The position numbers and the translations under genes were made by a program. A stretch of 64,000 bases of DNA, from positions 394,730 to 458,729 of IMG/VR virus record IMGVR_UViG_3300028920_000022; one strand, 5' to 3'. The notes under the pieces are model-generated. The model saw nothing but the letters and a program-made list of their open reading frames with translations. It made no database searches and was not told where the DNA came from. Shown in pieces: positions 1,740-60,279 of the stretch. Within the stretch, counting starts at the first letter, position 1; each line of letters begins with the position of its first letter.

Positions 1740-3146
1740 ATGGGAAAATTGAAGGTGTGGAAAGTTGGCGCAGCTGGAGAACCCAGTTTTCCTGCCAATT
1801 TTGAGGTGGCTAAAAAAGCCGTTCTCCAAGTTACAGATATTAAAACAAATCGTAATAAGTATTATGCCATAGAACTACACTCTGCTGGCAATAAATATAG
1901 AGTGTTTACTCATTATGGTCGAACAGATGATCTGGACACGAATCCTAATGCTGGGGTGCGCGAGGTTCGTTACGGCAACTTGTCTGAATGTGAAGCAACC
2001 TATCATCAGATATATAGTCAAAAAACTAGCGCAAGAAAAGGATATAAGGAACTTAGCTTAGCATCTTCGCGTATTGGTTCGTCTCAATCGGTTGGTAAAT
2101 CTAGCGGACATGTTGATGACAAAACGCTTGAAAAACTAAACAACGGTAACAAGAAAGTGATAAAAAACAAAGTTTCTACACTTTCTCCCGTTGTACAAGA
2201 TTTTGTTTCTTATATTTATGCTGAAGCCACTAATGCCCTAACTAGCACAATTAATGCCAGCATTACCGCTAATGGTATCGAAACGCCTCTTGGTGTTTTG
2301 ACACTGGGTCAGATTGATAAGGGGCAAAAGATTTTGGATGAGCTTTATGATTTATTCAATTCAAAAAAGAGCCAATCAATACGTGACCATATGGTAGAAC
2401 TGAGTGGTGAGTTTTATACAGTAATTCCTCACAGAATAGGCAGAACTAGGGCTGCTGTAGAAGCTGCTGTTATTGATAGTTTAGTAGATTTTAATGCTAA
2501 GCAAGACACATTACAACTTATGCGAGACATGTTAAGTGTTTCGGGTAAAGACTCCCAGGTACTTATTAACCCTGAAATTGATAAGAAATATAATGCTTTG
2601 GGTTGCGAAATTAAAACTGTAGATAATAAAAAGTATCAAGAATTGAAGGATTATGTAGAGAAATCACAAATAAAAACCAGAAATATTAAAGTAAAGAATA
2701 TATATTCATTATGCAGACCAGAAGAACAAAAGGTTTTTGCTGATAATATTTCAAATAAACGATTACTTTTTCACGGTTCTAGGGCAAAAAACTGGGTAGG
2801 TATTCTTTCCCGTGGTTTGTTGCTTCCTAAGATTGTGGTTAGCTTGGGTGTAAACCGAACTGACGCAGGTTGGCTTGGAAATGGTATTTATTTCGGAGAT
2901 GCTGTTTGCACTACATTATACTACACGTCTCCTGGAAGGCAGAGAAACACCCGGATGATGGCGATAGCGAATGTAGCATTAGGAAAGATGAAGGATTTTA
3001 ATAGAATTACGTATGGATTAAAAGGACCACCCGCTGGATATCATAGTTGTCATGGTGTACGTGGAACCTCATTTGCAGATGATGAATATGTAATTTATGA
3101 CCAGAAACAGCAGAAACTTGAGTATTTAGTGGAGTATGTGTCATGA
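1740..3146 (+). CDS. Poly(ADP-ribose) polymerase-family protein (WGR + regulatory + catalytic domains)
   Basis: WGR-like NKYY.IELH...HYGR; helical regulatory domain (FYTVIPH); catalytic LLFHGS, GNGIYF, DEYVIYD (H-Y-E). Confidence 0.9.
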   Translation: MGKLKVWKVGAAGEPSFPANFEVAKKAVLQVTDIKTNRNKYYAIELHSAGNKYRVFTHYGRTDDLDTNPNAGVREVRYGNLSECEATYHQIYSQKTSARKGYKELSLASSRIGSSQSVGKSSGHVDDKTLEKLNNGNKKVIKNKVSTLSPVVQDFVSYIYAEATNALTSTINASITANGIETPLGVLTLGQIDKGQKILDELYDLFNSKKSQSIRDHMVELSGEFYTVIPHRIGRTRAAVEAAVIDSLVDFNAKQDTLQLMRDMLSVSGKDSQVLINPEIDKKYNALGCEIKTVDNKKYQELKDYVEKSQIKTRNIKVKNIYSLCRPEEQKVFADNISNKRLLFHGSRAKNWVGILSRGLLLPKIVVSLGVNRTDAGWLGNGIYFGDAVCTTLYYTSPGRQRNTRMMAIANVALGKMKDFNRITYGLKGPPAGYHSCHGVRGTSFADDEYVIYDQKQQKLEYLVEYVS

Positions 3147-3373
3147 GAACATCAGAACGTTTTAAAAATGCCCTTGTTGATTTTCCGGATATAGACGGTA
3201 TTCCCATCACATTTACACGTGACGAGCTGCGCATAATGCTGATGTTATGCCAGTCTGTAGAACAATTGTGTAACGAGGCGGAATCGTACATAGACATTGG
3301 GTTTGATACGGACAATGAATCGGTTCGTTTACGGGAAGCTGTGCGTATTGTTCGAGAAACATTGTATGAATAA
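3143..3373 (+). CDS. Hypothetical protein
   Basis: ATGA overlap with the PARP stop. Confidence 0.6.
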   Translation: MRTSERFKNALVDFPDIDGIPITFTRDELRIMLMLCQSVEQLCNEAESYIDIGFDTDNESVRLREAVRIVRETLYE

Positions 3374-3397
3374 TTGATTCAAAGGGGAAGAGCTGCT

Positions 3398-3670
3398 ATG
3401 ATTAAGTTCACACAATATTTGCGACCGAACGGAATTAAACAAGCGGTAGAAATCAAAAGACCCAAAGCTGTTGAAGAAATGGCGGATAAGATTATAGAAG
3501 CCGGAGGAGAGTTTGAGGTAGAGGTTTTAAGCACCGGTACAATTTCGTTGGAGGTGGTGCGGGAAAAAGATGGAGATATGGAAACGTTGTCTGCAGAAAT
3601 TTGTGACAATGGTCCTGCTGTTTTGATTGCCGTAGACAAACTGGTAAAAGCGGCTTTTGATGCTTGTTAA
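3398..3670 (+). CDS. Hypothetical phage protein
   Basis: GGGG SD-like site before ATG 3398; operon context. Confidence 0.6.
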   Translation: MIKFTQYLRPNGIKQAVEIKRPKAVEEMADKIIEAGGEFEVEVLSTGTISLEVVREKDGDMETLSAEICDNGPAVLIAVDKLVKAAFDAC

Positions 3671-3682
3671 GTTAGACGGGTT

Positions 3683-4309
3683 GTGGAGGAGTACATCATG
3701 AGTGCTGATTTTTCAAAATGCTGGTTCAATACTTGGGAAATAGAAGGATACATTAAATCACGCCCATGGCGTGATTGTTGGGGAAACCACCAACCAAACT
3801 TCAATTGTTTCTTTAGAAATAGTTGTGGCAAATTATTTCCAATGAACGATGCTGTTAAAGATGTCATGTCGTCCCACGCTCGTGAAATATTGAGCAGGCA
3901 TCCACAGGTTCAGTTGTCAGAGTTTTTGGCAAGATTAGAAGATTCAAACAATTACATCTCTTTGCGGGATGGAATACTAGAATGGAAACGTCAATGTTTT
4001 GAGGAATATAAAAAATCTTTGGAACAAGAAGAATGTTACATCAAACATGCCCTGAAATATGGATATGATAAAGTTTTAGAATTGCCCATAGAAGATCAGG
4101 AATCGATAGATTTTACAGAAGGATCTGTGTTGTTGGAAGATGGCAAATTCTCTACCACCTTTCGCGATCATAATGGTGATATTTTTATCATAAGTGGCGA
4201 CACTGAGTTACCTCTTTCGATTAAAGAAGAATTTTTGAGCACCTATAATGGGCTAGGATCTGCCCAATATTCAGAAAACAGCGAGAAGCCCGAAGATGAT
4301 CAAAGATGA
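3683..4309 (+). CDS. Hypothetical protein
   Basis: Long ORF; GGAGGAG SD before ATG 3698. Confidence 0.65.
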   Translation: MEEYIMSADFSKCWFNTWEIEGYIKSRPWRDCWGNHQPNFNCFFRNSCGKLFPMNDAVKDVMSSHAREILSRHPQVQLSEFLARLEDSNNYISLRDGILEWKRQCFEEYKKSLEQEECYIKHALKYGYDKVLELPIEDQESIDFTEGSVLLEDGKFSTTFRDHNGDIFIISGDTELPLSIKEEFLSTYNGLGSAQYSENSEKPEDDQR

Positions 4310-4331: not shown

Positions 4332-4574
4332 ATGAGAAATCACAGTTTCATTCGGGTGGAAACACCACAAAGTTACTCCGCTCACAAAACAGCACAGTAT
4401 TATAGATGTCAAAGATGTAATTTATTAATGTATGACACTGGCATTTCTCGTTACGTTTCTTGTCTGCATGATACTGGCATTATGCCAACGCCGCTTATGT
4501 CGCCAGACACAATAGACTGTGAAATGCAAGAAATAATATGGAAAGAAGAAATTATTAAGGACATAATAGAATGA
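4332..4574 (+). CDS. Small Cys protein, IKDIIE C-terminal tag family
   Basis: YYRCQRC motif; ends IIKDIIE; paralog of the next ORF. Confidence 0.65.
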   Translation: MRNHSFIRVETPQSYSAHKTAQYYRCQRCNLLMYDTGISRYVSCLHDTGIMPTPLMSPDTIDCEMQEIIWKEEIIKDIIE

Positions 4575-27525: not shown

Positions 27526-27929
27526 TCTATTATATCTTTGATTATTTTTTCATTTTCGGTTAAAAATTCTTCTCTATACACGTTATCTGCTACCCACGAT
27601 ACTCTTAAAGAATTGCTATGAGAATATCCAGTTAAGATAGCGTTACAAACATGGGTAATATATTTTTTATGATTTTCTTTCCAACCGAACATAAAATGAA
27701 ATTTATTATCCACACTGGTTCCACGAAAACGTTCTTTTACAAAATGTTCGATATCAAAGTTTTCGTCAAATAAAATCAAACCTTCTAATTCACCATGAAC
27801 ATCTTCATATCTTCCGCAATATTCGACGGTCATGGTGAGGCTATAAGCCCAACCGATAATTTCTTCGTTGTACAGTACTTGAACACTATTCGATAATGTA
27901 GCGAATGTCGATATTAGTTCTACAGGCAT
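27522..27929 (-). CDS. Hypothetical protein (possible tail-tube-like), IKDIIE family
   Basis: Ends KIIKDIIE; ATGA coupling. Confidence 0.6.
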   Translation of the reverse strand: MPVELISTFATLSNSVQVLYNEEIIGWAYSLTMTVEYCGRYEDVHGELEGLILFDENFDIEHFVKERFRGTSVDNKFHFMFGWKENHKKYITHVCNAILTGYSHSNSLRVSWVADNVYREEFLTENEKIIKDIIE

Positions 27930-54666: not shown

Positions 54667-56148
54667 TTAACTAAGAAGATATCGAATTATTCGCTCGATA
54701 ATTCCTTCTTCCTCGACAGGTTTTTCTTCGACAGGTTTTTTGAATTCGTTTGTAGGAGCTTGGGCTACCGGTATCGGTTTTCCTCGCTTGGCTGCATTAT
54801 ACCTGCCCTGTATTGTAGCGGCAATATCGCCCACAGTATAGTAGCCTTTTTTGTTTCTGTCAAATGTCTTATTCCAACCGTACGCTATTGAACCCTCGCG
54901 AGCAGCAACATAATTTGATGGGCGACCCATCAAATTCGGCATAAATACCGCCAAATAAGCATCTTTTACATTATGTATCTTGCCCTTATGAGGCATATAC
55001 CAGCGTTTTACCATATCTAACTGTTTTAATGCACTTTGTGACTTCATCCATTCCGAAGCCATCTTTTTTCCTTGCAAATCTAGTTTGGTTCCCCGTGGTG
55101 GTACTCCATAGTATTTTTGTATATTAGACGGCATCCATTGAATTAAACCGGTAGCATAAGAATATTTATTTACTGCCTTTGGATTAAACCCAGATTCAAG
55201 ACTAATTACTGTAGCTAACATATTAGGATCTATATCTACGTCATTTGCTACTTGAATTAACTTTTGTTTAAACTCAGGAGTGGTTCTCTCTAACCCTCTT
55301 ACAGGAATTAATCCATCAGATCTGTAATTATTGGTTTGGCGTTCTTCTCCGGTAGGATAATGTAAATCTACACCTTTATGCCATTTAGGATTTCTACTGG
55401 TTGGAGGGTGCCAGCTAATTTTTGCTATATATTTTTCACCGCCCAATGTAAAAGCAATCAAAGTTCCTAATGGGCGATCACCAAACCTTTTTAGTATTGC
55501 TACTGCCGCTTTAGAGAGAGCTGGAGTTACCTCGCTGTCCTTCATAGCCCTCATGTTAACATTTGGCGCAGAAGGGCTCTGTTTACCAGTGGTAGCCCAG
55601 CTCCAAATTTCATCTGCCCATTGAGAATATCCCTTGCCGGTTGGGTGAATTTTGTCTACTTTGCTGTGAGGTAAATTAACTTCTCTGCTATCAAAAAAGT
55701 GTTTGGTATTACTCTGTATTGTCCCTAAAATATTTCTTTTGATAGGTACCCCGGCAGATTTATCTGGCAGTGTTGGTGCCCCTATCCATAGAGGAGTGGC
55801 TCCGGATGATTTGATGGTATTTGTTAATTCTTGGGTTAATGAGGCTATTTGTTTGGTGGACATGCCTCCGTAAGCATCATTAGTACCTAGACAAATAAAT
55901 ACGTGGGTTGGTTGAAAGGTTTTTAACTGATGGTTTAACCATTGTCTGCCTTCGCCTTTGGTCCAATACCATACAGTTTTGCTACCTACGCCTTTCCCTT
56001 TATATGGAATGCCTGCGTTTTCTATGCGCTGTTTTAATGGGGCATTTAAGCCCACAGCCAAGGAGTCACCGATCAGTAGGACTTTTTGCTGGGCGGCGAT
56101 TTTGTGGAAGTTGGAACAGGCTTTTTCCAGGGAAGAATAGCGTAACAT
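54667..56148 (-). CDS. SGNH/GDSL hydrolase fused to a lysozyme-like transglycosylase
   Basis: IGDSLA, LGTND, D.IHPTGKGY; VISLESGFNP.AVN, TGLIQWM, Y.AVFMP. Confidence 0.8.
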   Translation of the reverse strand: MLRYSSLEKACSNFHKIAAQQKVLLIGDSLAVGLNAPLKQRIENAGIPYKGKGVGSKTVWYWTKGEGRQWLNHQLKTFQPTHVFICLGTNDAYGGMSTKQIASLTQELTNTIKSSGATPLWIGAPTLPDKSAGVPIKRNILGTIQSNTKHFFDSREVNLPHSKVDKIHPTGKGYSQWADEIWSWATTGKQSPSAPNVNMRAMKDSEVTPALSKAAVAILKRFGDRPLGTLIAFTLGGEKYIAKISWHPPTSRNPKWHKGVDLHYPTGEERQTNNYRSDGLIPVRGLERTTPEFKQKLIQVANDVDIDPNMLATVISLESGFNPKAVNKYSYATGLIQWMPSNIQKYYGVPPRGTKLDLQGKKMASEWMKSQSALKQLDMVKRWYMPHKGKIHNVKDAYLAVFMPNLMGRPSNYVAAREGSIAYGWNKTFDRNKKGYYTVGDIAATIQGRYNAAKRGKPIPVAQAPTNEFKKPVEEKPVEEEGIIERIIRYLLS

Positions 56149-56160
56149 CTCAGAATAATG

Positions 56161-56574
56161 CTATTTTATTACGTCCTCGATGATGAAGTTATTTTTCCAC
56201 CCATTGAACCACTTTTCGGCTTTTCTCATGCATAAAATCATGTCAAGTTCGACATTGGAAATGGCTTGGAGTCGGTTGAACCAGTCTAAAAACAATTCAC
56301 GAAAATCTTCGTTTATCTCTTCTGATTTTGTAACAGTGTAAGTTAATTTTCCAGGAATAATTTCATCACTTTTGCAAAACAAAGCAACCTCTAATTTATG
56401 TGCGTAGTGTTCAGGATTAGGATCATCGTAGTATCTTGTCCCTGATACCACTTCTGGAATTAATCTGTACAGGTGCATGTTTAAAACATAACCCGGGCAA
56501 TATATGGAAAACTCTGACCGATCAGCTTTTTGACCGCCTCTGTTTATGTTGATGGTAGTTATATATGGTTTCAC
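56161..56574 (-). CDS. Hypothetical protein, IKDIIE-like end
   Basis: Ends FIIEDVIK. Confidence 0.55.
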   Translation of the reverse strand: MKPYITTININRGGQKADRSEFSIYCPGYVLNMHLYRLIPEVVSGTRYYDDPNPEHYAHKLEVALFCKSDEIIPGKLTYTVTKSEEINEDFRELFLDWFNRLQAISNVELDMILCMRKAEKWFNGWKNNFIIEDVIK

Positions 56575-56833
56575 TTTTCCTCGGAAAATGTTTGTACCAA
56601 GCGATTACAGCTACAATGGAAAAATTCATCACATAATTAACCATCAGCACAAAGTCAGAAGAATAATTAGCTAGAGTATAGCAAATATAGCAGAACTCTC
56701 CAATCAGCCAAAGCCAAATTGTGAGGGTCGCCATCCCATTAGCATGTCCTTCTTTTATGGCTTTCAGCATCTGCGGAAGCCCAGAGAAGGAAAAGCATAC
56801 CATACCGATAAGCCCAACTACCACTAAATTCAT
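56522..56833 (-). CDS. PQ-loop/SemiSWEET-like membrane protein
   Basis: GLIG..CF....LPQM.K..K.G.A.G; three TM helices. Confidence 0.75.
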   Translation of the reverse strand: MNLVVVGLIGMVCFSFSGLPQMLKAIKEGHANGMATLTIWLWLIGEFCYICYTLANYSSDFVLMVNYVMNFSIVAVIAWYKHFPRKSETIYNYHQHKQRRSKS

Positions 56834-56860
56834 AACGATAAATGGACAAAAATTAGTAGG

Positions 56861-56933
56861 CGGGTCCTGCGAGATTTGAACTCGCGTCTAAAAGCTTTAA
56901 AGGCTTTCGCTCTCGCCGCTGAGCTAAGGACCC
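56861..56933 (-). tRNA. Ochre suppressor tRNA (anticodon TTA), Lys-like body
   Basis: GGGTCCT/AGGACCC acceptor, GCTC/GAGC D-stem, AAAGC-CTTTAAA-GCTTT anticodon arm, GCGAG-TTCAAAT-CTCGC T-arm, G73. Confidence 0.92.
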
Positions 56934-57253
56934 AGAGCCAAATTAAGTTTGCTACATAGCTTCTTAGATTTCCTACCGGGCTCTAAAGCAATTGCTGTAA
57001 TCTCATCATCGAAATCTGGTTCTCTAAATATAGAAAACTTGATTTCCTTTTCTTTCGCCAATCCCATCAATTCCTTTAAACTATTCTCGTTTTCTGTTTC
57101 TAATATAACTAAGTAGTTTGAGGAATTGAACCACAACAAATCTTCCTGCGGATGATCGTTTACGAAAGCTCTCAGTGCATGACAGGATTGTGCTGCCCTA
57201 GCTCCTGGGGAAAGGTCTGTTCTAGTGACAATATACAGTTTGTTTTAAGCCAT
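56924..57253 (-). CDS. Peptidyl-tRNA hydrolase II-like protein with in-frame TAA at codon 3
   Basis: GAGGA SD; ATG GCT TAA AAC AAA CTG TAT ATT...; KLYIVTRTDL.PG..AAQSCHA, YLVIL, FREPD, TAIAL motifs. Confidence 0.82.
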
Positions 57254-57254
57254 G

Positions 57255-57788
57255 TCAATCCTCGTCATCGTAGTCTGATTCTTCCGCAATTTCTTTCCGT
57301 TCTTGAGCACACGCCCTGAAATAACTGGATATCCTTTCTACTATAGTTTCTGGAATGTCTTGTTTACGAAACTTTTCTTTCCACCCTTCGTATGGTGTGT
57401 CGCCAGAAATCCAATGTCTTTCTCCAACAGTAAAACAGGGAGGGTCGCTATATATCCGACCTAAATCTGTTTCAATATATGGCCAAATCTCAAGTGGTGA
57501 GTCATTACAGCAGCCGCAGTTGTGTCTAATTTCGCAATCATTGACTCGGTTATTGAGTGAAGCAGAACAAAACCTTTCAGTTTTCCACCTATTTATATGA
57601 CGGCGCAAATCCGGGTATTTTTCGCTTCTTTTTATAAGCAAGTCTAGTTCTTGTTGTTTTTTCTGGACCTCTTTTTCTAATTCGTCTATTATACCCGGAA
57701 TACTGTCTTTCCAATTTTGGTATTCCCGTTGTTCTTCGGGGGTCATTTTAAAGTAGTCTTTGTCGGTATATTTGCTGTAGTCTTTCAT
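57255..57788 (-). CDS. Hypothetical protein
   Basis: RHNCGCC.DSPLE..PY motif; ATGA-coupled to the upstream gene. Confidence 0.7.
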   Translation of the reverse strand: MKDYSKYTDKDYFKMTPEEQREYQNWKDSIPGIIDELEKEVQKKQQELDLLIKRSEKYPDLRRHINRWKTERFCSASLNNRVNDCEIRHNCGCCNDSPLEIWPYIETDLGRIYSDPPCFTVGERHWISGDTPYEGWKEKFRKQDIPETIVERISSYFRACAQERKEIAEESDYDDED

Positions 57789-58108
57789 GCTGCCTCCTGA
57801 GATATTCTGTTAATTCGTACAAAGAGCCAATCACGAACTTCCTTCCACTCAGGTCCTGAAACAGAAAACTCAATATCAGAGGCTCTGCAAATATATTTTG
57901 CAATATCTAGAGCCAATCCGGTATAAAACGTAGTCCTTCCAGTTGAGCAATGTTTGTCTTCGTTCGTGGTTCGTTCCATAACCTCATAAGGCAAACCACG
58001 CAAAAAACCATATGCCAACAATCTACAGCGTTGTTTCCAACCGCCAGCTTTAGCACCTTCAATCACCCAAAGTCTAAGTTGAGCAATAGCATTTTTTCTT
58101 GTATTCAT
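57785..58108 (-). CDS. Hypothetical phage protein (first gene of the pth operon)
   Basis: AGGAG SD; RCRLLAYGFLRG.PYE..E motif. Confidence 0.7.
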   Translation of the reverse strand: MNTRKNAIAQLRLWVIEGAKAGGWKQRCRLLAYGFLRGLPYEVMERTTNEDKHCSTGRTTFYTGLALDIAKYICRASDIEFSVSGPEWKEVRDWLFVRINRISQEAA

Positions 58109-58124
58109 GTCAATCTCCTAAAAA

Positions 58125-58202
58125 TCAAAAAGTTACAAACAGTTTTTCTGGAAACTTTTGTTTAGGAGGTCCACGAATTTGATTAATTTACGAGTCGTGC
58201 AT
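58125..58202 (-). promoter_or_regulatory. Leader uORF MHDS*INQIRGPPKQKFPEKLFVTF* (ochre + RGPP arrest-like motif) with attenuator-like hairpin
   Basis: Translation of 58202-58125; TAA at 58190-58188; CAAAAGTT...AACTTTTTG pairing followed by a T-rich run and the SD. Confidence 0.65.
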
Positions 58203-58242
58203 GTTGTATTTATTCTTGTTTATTAGTTGACAGCTCGACAAA

Positions 58243-58731
58243 TCATCTATGGACCCTATTAATTGCCACATCTGGCTTATCTGGCTTATCTGGCTTATCT
58301 GGCTTATCAGGTTTATCAGGTTTGTCTGGCAAAACAGGTGCAGGTTTATCTACGGAAGCCGTTCCAATAGCTTTAATTTTCTTATCTTTATTATTTTGAA
58401 ATGTTGTCAAACGAGTATCTATTTTTTCTTGAAACAAATTTATAATATCAAGAACATCTTGTTGTCTAGGTCTTTCTGGTAGTGGAATTTGCCGCATTTC
58501 TAGGTAACTATTGTTTAGCTCCTGTTTAATATTATTACAACAGCCAGACTGTATTTGGTTGTATAAAAGCATTAAATCTACTAATGCAGCTTTTGCGTCT
58601 TTATCTAAATTATCTTGTTTTACACCGTATATTCTTCTTCCAATGATTTTGCGCAAACTTTTGTATCCGGCAAGTAGCCTATTTCCGCTTCTTATCGTAT
58701 TTAGAATAATTATTTTATTTTTGGTGTTCAT
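58243..58731 (-). CDS. Hypothetical protein with PDK repeats
   Basis: ATGA-coupled. Confidence 0.6.
   Translation of the reverse strand: MNTKNKIIILNTIRSGNRLLAGYKSLRKIIGRRIYGVKQDNLDKDAKAALVDLMLLYNQIQSGCCNNIKQELNNSYLEMRQIPLPERPRQQDVLDIINLFQEKIDTRLTTFQNNKDKKIKAIGTASVDKPAPVLPDKPDKPDKPDKPDKPDKPDVAINRVHR
58271..58330. repeat. 9-bp tandem repeat (TCTGGCTTA)n encoding PDK
   Basis: About 6.7 units. Confidence 0.9.
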
Positions 58732-58916
58732 TCTATTATGTTTTTGATATCGAAATCCCTATCAGAAATGGTACAAGGTCTTAGCCTTTTGTGCGGAATA
58801 TAGAAATTTCCTTTATAGACAGTAGTTCGTAGTTGTCTTTTTGTTTTTCCACATTTTAAGCAACGTTTTTGATTCCAGCCATTGTCGGTTTTCCATTTGT
58901 GCTTATAGTTCGCCAT
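58728..58916 (-). CDS. Small Cys protein, IKDIIE family
   Basis: CLKC; ends DIKNIIE. Confidence 0.6.
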   Translation of the reverse strand: MANYKHKWKTDNGWNQKRCLKCGKTKRQLRTTVYKGNFYIPHKRLRPCTISDRDFDIKNIIE

Positions 58917-59526
58917 TTTTAGTTGCCTGCATGTAGTGGTTTGCAACCCAAGGAAGATATTTCCTCCACTCTTGGCTCTGTTCATAACGCTTTTTATCAA
59001 AAATAGGATTACGCAACTTATCCAACACGATAAGTTTTGTTGGGTCTAAAACACAAACTTCGTCACGATCACCTGAAGTAATAAACCCCTTTAATGCAGA
59101 ATACCCTTGGGATCGCAAAATTATATTTGTAGCCAAATGTTTGTTTTGAATTTCGCTTTTATCAATTTTATCGATTAATGGTCGTTTTTCGAAAAAACCC
59201 CAGCCTCTAACATCTAAAGCTTTTCCAATAAAATCAAAAATAAACATGTTTTGGTATAAACTTACCGATTGCATATTGCTTTCAAATGAACCTATGTCAT
59301 TATTTCTTAATCTTTCTATGACCCTGTCACTAATTTCATAACCGTAGATACCAACGGGATTAAGTCCAGGATATCTTGGACGTGTATTTATGCCCAATTT
59401 ATCGGCAGAAGTGAAGTGTAAATATTTTCCAACATACTTTTCCAGTGTATAAAATACATCTTCCAGCTCCACACCCTCACGTTCATATCGGGTTTTTCCC
59501 ATTTTCTCCATACCTTTATGTGTCAA
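58903..59526 (-). CDS. Stand-alone paralog of the giant protein's N-terminal ART-like domain
   Basis: YLHFT..KLGIN...PVGIYGY...GYSAL...DEVCVLD. Confidence 0.6.
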   Translation of the reverse strand: MTHKGMEKMGKTRYEREGVELEDVFYTLEKYVGKYLHFTSADKLGINTRPRYPGLNPVGIYGYEISDRVIERLRNNDIGSFESNMQSVSLYQNMFIFDFIGKALDVRGWGFFEKRPLIDKIDKSEIQNKHLATNIILRSQGYSALKGFITSGDRDEVCVLDPTKLIVLDKLRNPIFDKKRYEQSQEWRKYLPWVANHYMQATKNGEL

Positions 59527-59756
59527 TATTGGATGGAAGGTTGTGTATCTATATCGTCCAGATTTTCTCTTATAAAATATAGATATCGCTCAAATTTCTT
59601 GGGGTTTTCTAGAAGTATTGTATATTCGGCGGGAGAAATTCCTAAGTATTCGTGTAGTGTCAAATTAGATTTGGACAAATTCCAATCTGTGATTTCGTCG
59701 TGGATATCCTCAAACTCAACCTCCCCTCTTAGGTAGCGTGTAAGAAAGTTTTCCAA
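59523..59756 (-). CDS. Small phage protein
   Basis: DIHDEI..W......LHEYLGIS..EY. Confidence 0.65.
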   Translation of the reverse strand: MENFLTRYLRGEVEFEDIHDEITDWNLSKSNLTLHEYLGISPAEYTILLENPKKFERYLYFIRENLDDIDTQPSIQY

Positions 59757-59766
59757 ACAGTCCTTT

Positions 59767-60279
59767 TTAGAGTATCGTTTTAATTTCCGGCAAATTGCGG
59801 CAGGTTTGTTTATAATCTAAACCATAACCAATCACAAATTTATCTTCAATCGTAAAACCAAGATAATCTATTTTTACTTCTTTCACTGTTTTTGCCGGTT
59901 TATGCAGTAATGAACATAACTTTACGGACTTTGGTTTTCTAGCTGATAGCATATCCAAAAGATATCTGGATGTCAAGCCTGTATCTACTACATCTTCCAC
60001 AATTAACACATGTTCATTTTCTATGGAGAAATTTAGATCGTGTGTAATTTGTACGAGACCACTAGATTTATTATCATCACCATAGCTTTGAACACCCATA
60101 AATCCTATTTTCATCGGTGTTTTTATTTGTCGTGATAAATCAGCCGTAAATATAAAACTACCCTTCAAAATACAAATCAATACTATTGATTTCCCGTCGT
60201 AATCCTTGGTAATCTGTTTGCCTAACTGTTTGATTTTATTACGTATTTTACGTTCTGAAATTAAAGTTTTCATGCGCAA
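59767..60279 (-). CDS. hpt: Hypoxanthine phosphoribosyltransferase
   Basis: ICILKGS.IF.ADL, VLIVEDVVDTGLT, LLHKP, FVIGYGLDY...RNLP. Confidence 0.95.
   Translation of the reverse strand: MRMKTLISERKIRNKIKQLGKQITKDYDGKSIVLICILKGSFIFTADLSRQIKTPMKIGFMGVQSYGDDNKSSGLVQITHDLNFSIENEHVLIVEDVVDTGLTSRYLLDMLSARKPKSVKLCSLLHKPAKTVKEVKIDYLGFTIEDKFVIGYGLDYKQTCRNLPEIKTIL

Follow-up and report, generated by a model that had tools for sequence, protein, structure and literature searches.

Can a ribosome-arrest motif that lies behind an in-frame stop codon serve any purpose, and, if so, what would carry ribosomes across the stop? The question is raised by a short leader within a 64-kb stretch of DNA (the window) that forms part of a 458,729-bp IMG/VR phage contig, and hence of a huge phage. 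The leader was originally predicted to encode a peptide whose RGPP arrest motif is reachable only by stop read-through, overlapping an attenuator hairpin and T-run, and to act as a sensor of termination fidelity. The observation itself was confirmed. The interpretation is partly supported: the core idea holds on comparative evidence, but what is sensed is most likely the phage's own suppressor tRNA, and control is most likely translational rather than transcriptional.

The leader and its surroundings

The leader lies on the minus strand and reads ATG (58202-58200) CAC GAC TCG TAA (58190-58188), followed in frame by ATT AAT CAA ATT (58187-58176) and CGT GGA CCT CCT (58175-58164). The mini-ORF M-H-D-S-stop thus occupies 58188-58202 and the continuation I-N-Q-I-R-G-P-P 58164-58187, and the frame runs on to TGA at 58127-58125. 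An AGGAG Shine-Dalgarno (SD) sequence follows at 58119-58115 and the ATG of a 107-aa ORF, gene A (57785-58108, minus strand), at 58108-58106. The mini-ORF in the window has no SD, so its translation is inferred from relatives that do have one. No clear sigma-70-like promoter was found directly upstream of it. Several relatives carry AGG-type SDs 4-8 nt upstream of the ATG, as well as TTGACA-N16-17-TAnnnT boxes 6-9 nt upstream of the ATG or farther, as read by eye.

This is the only R[G/A]PP-coding 12-mer in all six frames of the window. The full pattern (ATG, 1-10 codons, stop, 0-6 codons, R[GA]PP) is expected 0.04 times per window in second-order Markov simulations. The window has 38% G+C, and all three stop codons end ORFs (TGA 49, TAA 33, TAG 21), so the standard code applies to the bulk of it.

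Gene A is followed on the same strand by gene B (177 aa, 57255-57788), whose start overlaps the stop of gene A (ATGA), so that, as read from the sequence, translation is coupled. Gene B carries a conserved HNCGCC motif. Both proteins fold confidently in predicted models (pLDDT 94.5 for the AlphaFold model of gene A, which is all-alpha, and 94.6 for gene B). Searches for their function returned nothing from Pfam, PHROGs, a PDB sequence profile (gene A only), the ESM Atlas (gene A only), or Foldseek against PDB (both; no significant match) and BFVD (gene A only; no significant match). Megablast of 2.6 kb around the site against GenBank phages gave no match.

Structure of the leader RNA

The hairpin that had been predicted, CAAAAGTT (58160-58153) with AACTTTTTG (58134-58126), is present but forms only the middle of a longer imperfect hairpin. 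In the outer stems CUCCUAAA (58168-58161) pairs with UUUAGGAG (58122-58115), and AUUCGUG (58178-58172) with CAUGAAU (58109-58103). The 5' strand of this helix (58161-58178) therefore consists of the same nucleotides as the I-R-G-P-P codons, and its 3' strand (58103-58122) is the initiation region of gene A, so that both the SD and the start codon are buried. The inner hairpin (58123-58160), which includes the end of the readthrough frame, is not conserved in sequence or length among lineages, although a hairpin is always present.

The T-run is the 3' strand of the anti-SD stem and not a terminator tail. The stem is A/U-rich, the U-run pairs with AAA after CCUCC, and a terminator scan found no terminator-like site on the minus strand in 57000-60000. 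The features of an intrinsic-terminator attenuator are thus lacking, and the original prediction of an attenuator is replaced by an SD- and AUG-sequestering helix. On thermodynamics alone the fold is only modestly unusual (z = -1.86; 10 of 200 shuffles fold as well). A search of Rfam at E up to 10 returned only noise.

Conservation of the leader among relatives

Conservation of the stop and motif in homologous leaders had been set beforehand as a test of the idea. Gene A has few close relatives, but belongs to a family of about 41 clusters in an exhaustive HMMER search; gene B has 57 clusters. Loci were retrieved through these proteins and never through the leader, giving 11 distinct lineages, a subset of the gene A clusters, including the window; the others are designated here by locus numbers. 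An alignment of 27 gene A sequences was too divergent for a scan, whereas an 8-sequence alignment found one distant megaphage locus, L158, and nothing in bacterial or archaeal genomes. DNA-pattern scans for the leader in metagenome and viral collections returned only the window type and the two nearest types, other hits being chance matches in G+C-rich coding DNA.

In 11 of 11 lineages the same layout precedes the gene A homologue: ATG, 3-8 sense codons, an in-frame stop, 0-5 codons, then R-[G/A]-P-P, always in frame. The leaders are MHDS-stop-INQIRGPP in the window, MKDS-stop-IKIRGPP in L003, MKDS-stop-IYKRIRGPP in L020, MTDS-stop-IYFINIRAPP in L145, MKHES-stop-IQNNIRGPP in L146, MKNYYTSFT-stop-GRHPP-stop-ARGPP in L158, MKDS-stop-ICTRIRGPP in L159, MKNA-stop-VNSIRGPP in L160, MWRFT-stop-IRGPP in L161, MKEL-stop-VKIRGPP in L163, and MENI-stop-VYRIRGPP in L164. 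The mini-ORF is ATG-x-(D/E)-S-stop or a similar ORF of 4-9 codons. The spacer to the RGPP core varies from 0 to 15 nt; measured between the stop and the I/A-R codons it is 0, 0, 3, 3, 6, 6, 6, 9, 9, 9 or 12 nt, always a multiple of three, which by chance is about (1/3)^10. The lineages share ancestry, however, so the simple probabilities given here overstate independence and are upper bounds on significance.

Ten lineages have RGPP and one has RAPP, and the Ile before Arg is kept in 10 of 11. All four third codon positions of the motif vary (CGT/CGC, GGA/GGC/GGT/GCT, CCT/CCA and CCT/CCA/CCG), while of the eight first and second positions only one does, and it gives Ala, the one other residue known to work (Fisher p about 0.01). 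L161, from a G+C-rich phage, writes Pro-Pro as CCA CCG; these are not anti-SD sequences, and its masking helix starts just downstream instead, with the motif within a ribosome footprint of it. The I-R-G-P-P nucleotides are also constrained by RNA pairing, which inflates their conservation, but the pattern is the signature of selection on a peptide on top of selection on an RNA helix.

The helix also covaries. The MFE hairpin sequesters SD and AUG in all nine lineages folded, L161 through a shifted helix, and RNAalifold on nine lineages keeps both stems. In the eight lineages that show the AUYCGYG:AUGRAU helix plus L164, the third base of the Ile codon pairs with the first base of codon 2 of gene A (RNAalifold pair 9:93) as U-A in five, C-G in three and U-G in one, with no C-A. 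Masking a ribosome footprint at the Pro codons raises the fold energy in the window from -18.9 to -4.1 kcal/mol and, in each of the nine lineages folded, removes the structure and leaves the SD free.

Suppressor tRNAs and the PTH2-like gene

ARAGORN finds a tRNA with anticodon UUA, which reads UAA, at 56859-56933 on the same strand, 1.25 kb downstream of the leader stop and as the last element of the same operon. Rfam scores it as a tRNA at 71.5 bits. This tRNA had been missed in the original prediction. A suppressor tRNA lies 0.6-1.3 kb away in every locus long enough to show it, and its anticodon matches the leader stop in 8 of 8 such loci (L003, L145 and L146 are short contigs that end too early): TAA with tRNA(UUA) in the window, TAG with tRNA(CUA) in L020/L157, L158, L159 (two copies), L160, L163 and L164, and TGA with tRNA(UCA) in L161. 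The tRNAs are not clearly orthologous. They are about 70% alike, no more than to unrelated tRNAs, so amino-acid identity is not assignable from similarity, and that of L158 is a long-arm class II tRNA. The tRNA seems replaceable, and the leader stop follows it. A selenocysteine or pyrrolysine reading of the ARAGORN labels was rejected, as the labels follow the anticodon only and Rfam scores these as ordinary tRNAs.

Between gene B and the tRNA lies a PTH2-like peptidyl-tRNA hydrolase gene (56924-57253, minus strand) that begins ATG GCT TAA AAC AAA CTG TAT ATT GTC, with an in-frame TAA at codon 3 (57247-57245). The Pfam match (PF01981, E 1.2e-10) covers profile positions 2-104 of 115 and starts right after the TAA; relatives score E about 1e-9 to 1e-10. 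The first ATG, GTG or TTG thereafter is 35 codons in. L020, L159, L160 and L164 have the same arrangement of start, one codon and stop, then N/V-(D)-K-L-Y-I-V, but with TAG, so that the matched stop occurs in five lineages. In L161 and L163 the gene has no stop, and its start overlaps or directly follows the stop of gene A. In this view the hydrolase would depend on suppression either directly or through the leader. All 17 gated stops, including the leader TAA of the window (followed by A), are followed by a purine, against 46 of 91 ordinary gene stops in the window. A purine after the stop is the classical context that favours suppression in E. coli.

Wider recoding is not evident within the window. 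Stop-free frames of at least 300 nt cover 89% of it, and a scan of the window, but not of the other 395 kb of the contig, for a start, a few codons, a stop and then a long ORF singled out only the PTH2-like gene, with one possible further case at 3143-4309. Treating each stop in turn as sense across the whole window was uninformative, as any freed stop raises ORF coverage in A+T-rich DNA.

Proposed mechanism

The leader is most likely a switch that reports whether the phage's own suppressor tRNA is active. Without the suppressor, ribosomes starting at the mini-ORF would terminate at the fifth codon, the leader RNA would stay folded, and gene A and the coupled genes would stay off. With charged suppressor tRNA, some ribosomes would read through the stop, translate I-N-Q-I-R-G-P and arrest on the anti-SD/anti-AUG strand, freeing the initiation region about 45 nt downstream. 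Gene A would then be translated, gene B by coupling, and the PTH2-like hydrolase after a second suppression at its codon 3. One long-lived stall could allow many downstream initiations, converting weak suppression into a clear ON signal. In published work RGPP and RAPP are the most robust arrest cores, resist EF-P and are avoided in proteomes (PMC12992588).

The sequence anatomy, the conserved frame, the peptide-level conservation of the motif, the covarying helix and the match between stop and anticodon are shown here. Translation of the mini-ORF, readthrough by this tRNA, the stall itself, its ON direction, its release and the amplifying effect are inferred, and a role of PTH2 in clearing the arrested short peptidyl-tRNA after drop-off is a guess based on gene linkage. 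Some points weigh against the model. TAA is the tightest stop and ends about a third of the ORFs in the window, so an efficient ochre suppressor would be costly; this argues for weak suppression, and for a sensor that amplifies it. Residues upstream of the core affect stalling in the known RAPP/RGPP arrest peptides, which are much longer (PMC10951233), whereas the nascent chain here would be only 9-20 residues. Taken together, the proposed mechanism is held with fairly good, though not full, confidence.

Alternative explanations

Of the alternatives, all of which appear unlikely, readthrough without arrest survives best. A ribosome passing the stop would simply unwind the hairpin and terminate near, or run into, gene A, giving ordinary coupling or an N-terminally extended product, with RGPP only a slow patch. 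In the window the readthrough frame ends 5 nt before the SD, in L145, L158 and L161 it runs on in phase into gene A with no stop, and the dependence on the suppressor tRNA would be the same. However, R-[G/A]-P-P is kept as a peptide in all 11 lineages while nothing after it is conserved in sequence, length or end point, the pattern expected if translation stops there, and in most lineages the frame ends in mid-hairpin, far from the SD. RGPP is moreover reported as the strongest arrest core (PMC12992588).

Nearly as well placed, but still unlikely, is an RNA-only switch, in which the conserved bases merely keep gene A off until a protein, temperature, an sRNA or coupling from upstream opens the helix, the mini-ORF, stop and frame being incidental. 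The helix is real and covaries, CCUCC is the exact complement of the SD and AUUCGUG of CAUGAAU, so nucleotide conservation is expected without any peptide, and the mini-ORF in the window lacks an SD. This model does not predict spacers that keep the frame in 11 of 11 lineages, variation confined to third codon positions plus the single Gly-to-Ala change, P-P kept as CCA CCG in L161 where the anti-SD lies elsewhere, a conserved ATG and stop, or a stop-anticodon match across three stop codons.

Sensing of basal termination fidelity of the host (near-cognate readthrough, release-factor activity), as originally predicted, shares the anatomy and needs no extra component, but is doubtful. The stop changes identity together with the anticodon of the neighbouring suppressor tRNA in 8 of 8 loci, the same matched stop sits in the PTH2-like gene, and UAA, the least leaky stop, is a poor choice for such a sensor. 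Less likely again is a minigene element, in which M-H-D-S-stop and M-A-stop, ORFs of 2-5 codons with genuine stops, provoke peptidyl-tRNA drop-off beside a hydrolase gene; drop-off and Pth dependence are established for lambda bar minigenes, but this explains neither the in-frame R[GA]PP nor the stop-anticodon match, nor why the PTH2 domain starts directly after the stop with no other usable start codon nearby. T-box-like pairing of the stop triplet with the anticodon, suggested only by their complementarity, is very improbable, as no T-box or other Rfam match was found at E up to 10, the leader of about 90 nt shows no counterpart of Stem I or of the T-box sequence, and the conserved frame with an upstream ATG and a downstream arrest motif is unexplained.

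Implications

Arrest peptides known so far report secretion force, small molecules or drugs; this one would report whether a stop codon is being read as sense, the coding state of the cell. Phages are thought to use suppressor tRNAs to time late gene expression, but no sensing or control device has been described, and the leader offers a compact candidate of about 100 nt plus one tRNA. It would show that phages coded mostly in the standard code can use a suppressor tRNA for targeted regulation of a few genes, in one lineage with UAA, and it ties two protein families and a PTH2-type hydrolase to stop-codon suppression. As a natural counterpart of engineered amber-gated leader switches, it could serve as a portable reporter of suppression efficiency.

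A more speculative and, on present evidence, unlikely reading is that the operon is a self-reinforcing genetic-code switch. Genes A and B would be new factors that boost suppression, by antagonising release factors or by protecting or charging the suppressor tRNA. The stop-gated leader would then give positive feedback, a little suppression making more A and B until the infected cell flips into a suppressing state, while the PTH2-like enzyme, gated by the same stop, would clear the arrested short peptidyl-tRNA and reset the leader. If so, the family would be the control device by which huge phages commit to reading a stop codon as sense, including UAA.

Comparison with known systems

Lambda bar minigenes are likewise two- to five-codon ORFs functionally linked to peptidyl-tRNA hydrolase, but they are toxic by-products in Pth-deficient hosts, with no in-frame arrest motif and no matched suppressor tRNA. 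In the amino-acid operon attenuation leaders (trpL, hisL, pheL) and the drug-dependent ermC and cat leaders, the position of a ribosome on a short leader ORF also decides between alternative RNA structures; the trp- and his-type leaders read out the supply of a particular charged tRNA, and the ermC and cat leaders unmask an SD through a stalled ribosome. Those leaders stall when a tRNA is scarce or a drug is bound, whereas here the ribosome would have to receive a tRNA for a stop codon in order to reach a built-in stall site, and no terminator is involved.

Phages with stop-codon recoding and code-change modules (suppressor tRNA, sometimes with a release factor and aminoacyl-tRNA synthetase; bioRxiv 10.1101/2021.08.26.457843; PMC9523058) also combine a phage-encoded suppressor tRNA with in-frame cognate stops, proposed to gate expression after the tRNA appears. 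They carry recoded TAG or TGA in many structural and lysis genes and show low coding density in the standard code, while in the window the only clear gated sites are a leader and codon 3 of one gene. One lineage here uses TAA; the recoded phages of that study reportedly used TAG or TGA, although it counted TAA suppressor tRNAs, and no arrest-peptide leader is mentioned there. The proposed logic is the same as that of a synthetic switch in which TAG was placed in the tna leader so that suppression is needed for induction (Liu, Qi, Yanofsky and Arkin 2011, as described in PMC6412442): translation of a regulatory leader beyond an inserted stop, allowed only by a suppressor tRNA, turns on the downstream gene. 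That switch is engineered, its output is transcriptional through masking of a Rho site, and its input is an unnatural amino acid with an orthogonal tRNA pair; the element here is natural, would act on translation and would use an RGPP arrest. Full-text literature searches found no natural example and no published description of this leader.

At its output end the leader would work like the RAPP-like arrest peptides ApdA, ApdP, ApcA, SecM and the Streptomyces RAPP/RGPP uORFs (PMC7897499, PMC10951233, PMC10987492, PMC12992588). It shares with them an R-[A/G]-P-P core near the end of an upstream ORF, here interrupted by a stop, an Ile before Arg as in ApdP (C-I-R-A-P-P) and SecM (G-I-R-A-G-P), and an arrest site on the strand that sequesters the SD of the next gene, so that stalling should switch that gene on. 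Those peptides are tens to hundreds of residues long, carry a signal or membrane segment, are released by the pulling force of the Sec/YidC machinery and sit in cellular genomes. Here the peptide is phage-encoded, and only 8-17 residues, counting the one inserted at each stop, precede the motif in every lineage, leaving no room for a targeting signal, which with force-dependent release is the defining input of that family. The element is therefore placed with the arrest-peptide leaders, as one in which control is proposed to lie at entry rather than at release, the gate being a stop codon opened by a co-encoded suppressor tRNA.

Genes and tRNAs flanking the leader

The PTH2-like peptidyl-tRNA hydrolase gene (56924-57253, minus strand) starts ATG GCT TAA, with the TAA at 57245-57247, and the domain begins right after the stop. 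The same layout with TAG occurs in four relatives, and the gene is missed or truncated by ordinary gene calling. The ochre suppressor tRNA (anticodon UUA) lies at 56859-56933 on the minus strand. The last three codons of the PTH2-like ORF, including its stop, overlap the tRNA 5' end, so RNase P processing would leave that mRNA without a stop codon. The best sigma-70-like site in the region (TTGACA-17-TATATT, 11 of 12), at 57230-57258 on the minus strand, lies across the end of gene B and the start of the PTH2-like gene and could give the tRNA its own transcript. Elsewhere in the window, at 3143-4309 on the plus strand, three open segments in one frame are separated only by single TAA codons at 3371 and 3668. 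This region may be one gene read through by the same tRNA, although Pfam searches gave no support either way.

Genes for tRNA-Pro(UGG) lie close to the suppressor tRNA in two lineages, at 2816-2891 in the L159 locus and at 3102-3178 in the L160 locus. This could matter for a switch that ties up Pro-tRNA, or it could be chance in tRNA-rich phages. The order of elements differs at 3020-3800 of locus L158, from a G+C-rich 436-kb phage, where a class II tRNA(CUA) is followed by a Sigma70_r4-containing ORF and then by a leader with two in-frame TAGs before A-R-G-P-P. Gene A there has a long N-terminal extension.

Sequence elements and surrounding regions

Just upstream of the mini-ORF, near-identical leaders in the related loci L005 and L006/L003 differ by a roughly 50-nt insertion carrying a CCCCTAGG...CCTAGGGG hairpin between the promoter-like box and the ATG. 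Homology between contexts begins at the ATG. Within the window, the 17-mer AAGGAYATAATAGAATG occurs 7 times with up to 3 mismatches, against 0.8 expected, at 4557, 4802, and 12810 on the plus strand and at 27539, 28286, 58745, and 62387 on the minus strand. In at least five copies (4557, 4802, 27539, 28286, and 58745) it ends in the ATG start codon of a gene, and it may be a phage-specific initiation or promoter box. A 9-nt tandem repeat of 6.8 copies at 58270-58330 encodes a (P-D-K)n tail on the upstream ORF 58243-58731. Also present are a 493-aa protein combining GDSL lipase/acylhydrolase and SLT transglycosylase domains (PHROG baseplate hub; 54667-56148, minus strand) and a PQ-loop membrane protein (56522-56833, minus strand), both of which recur next to the module in relatives.
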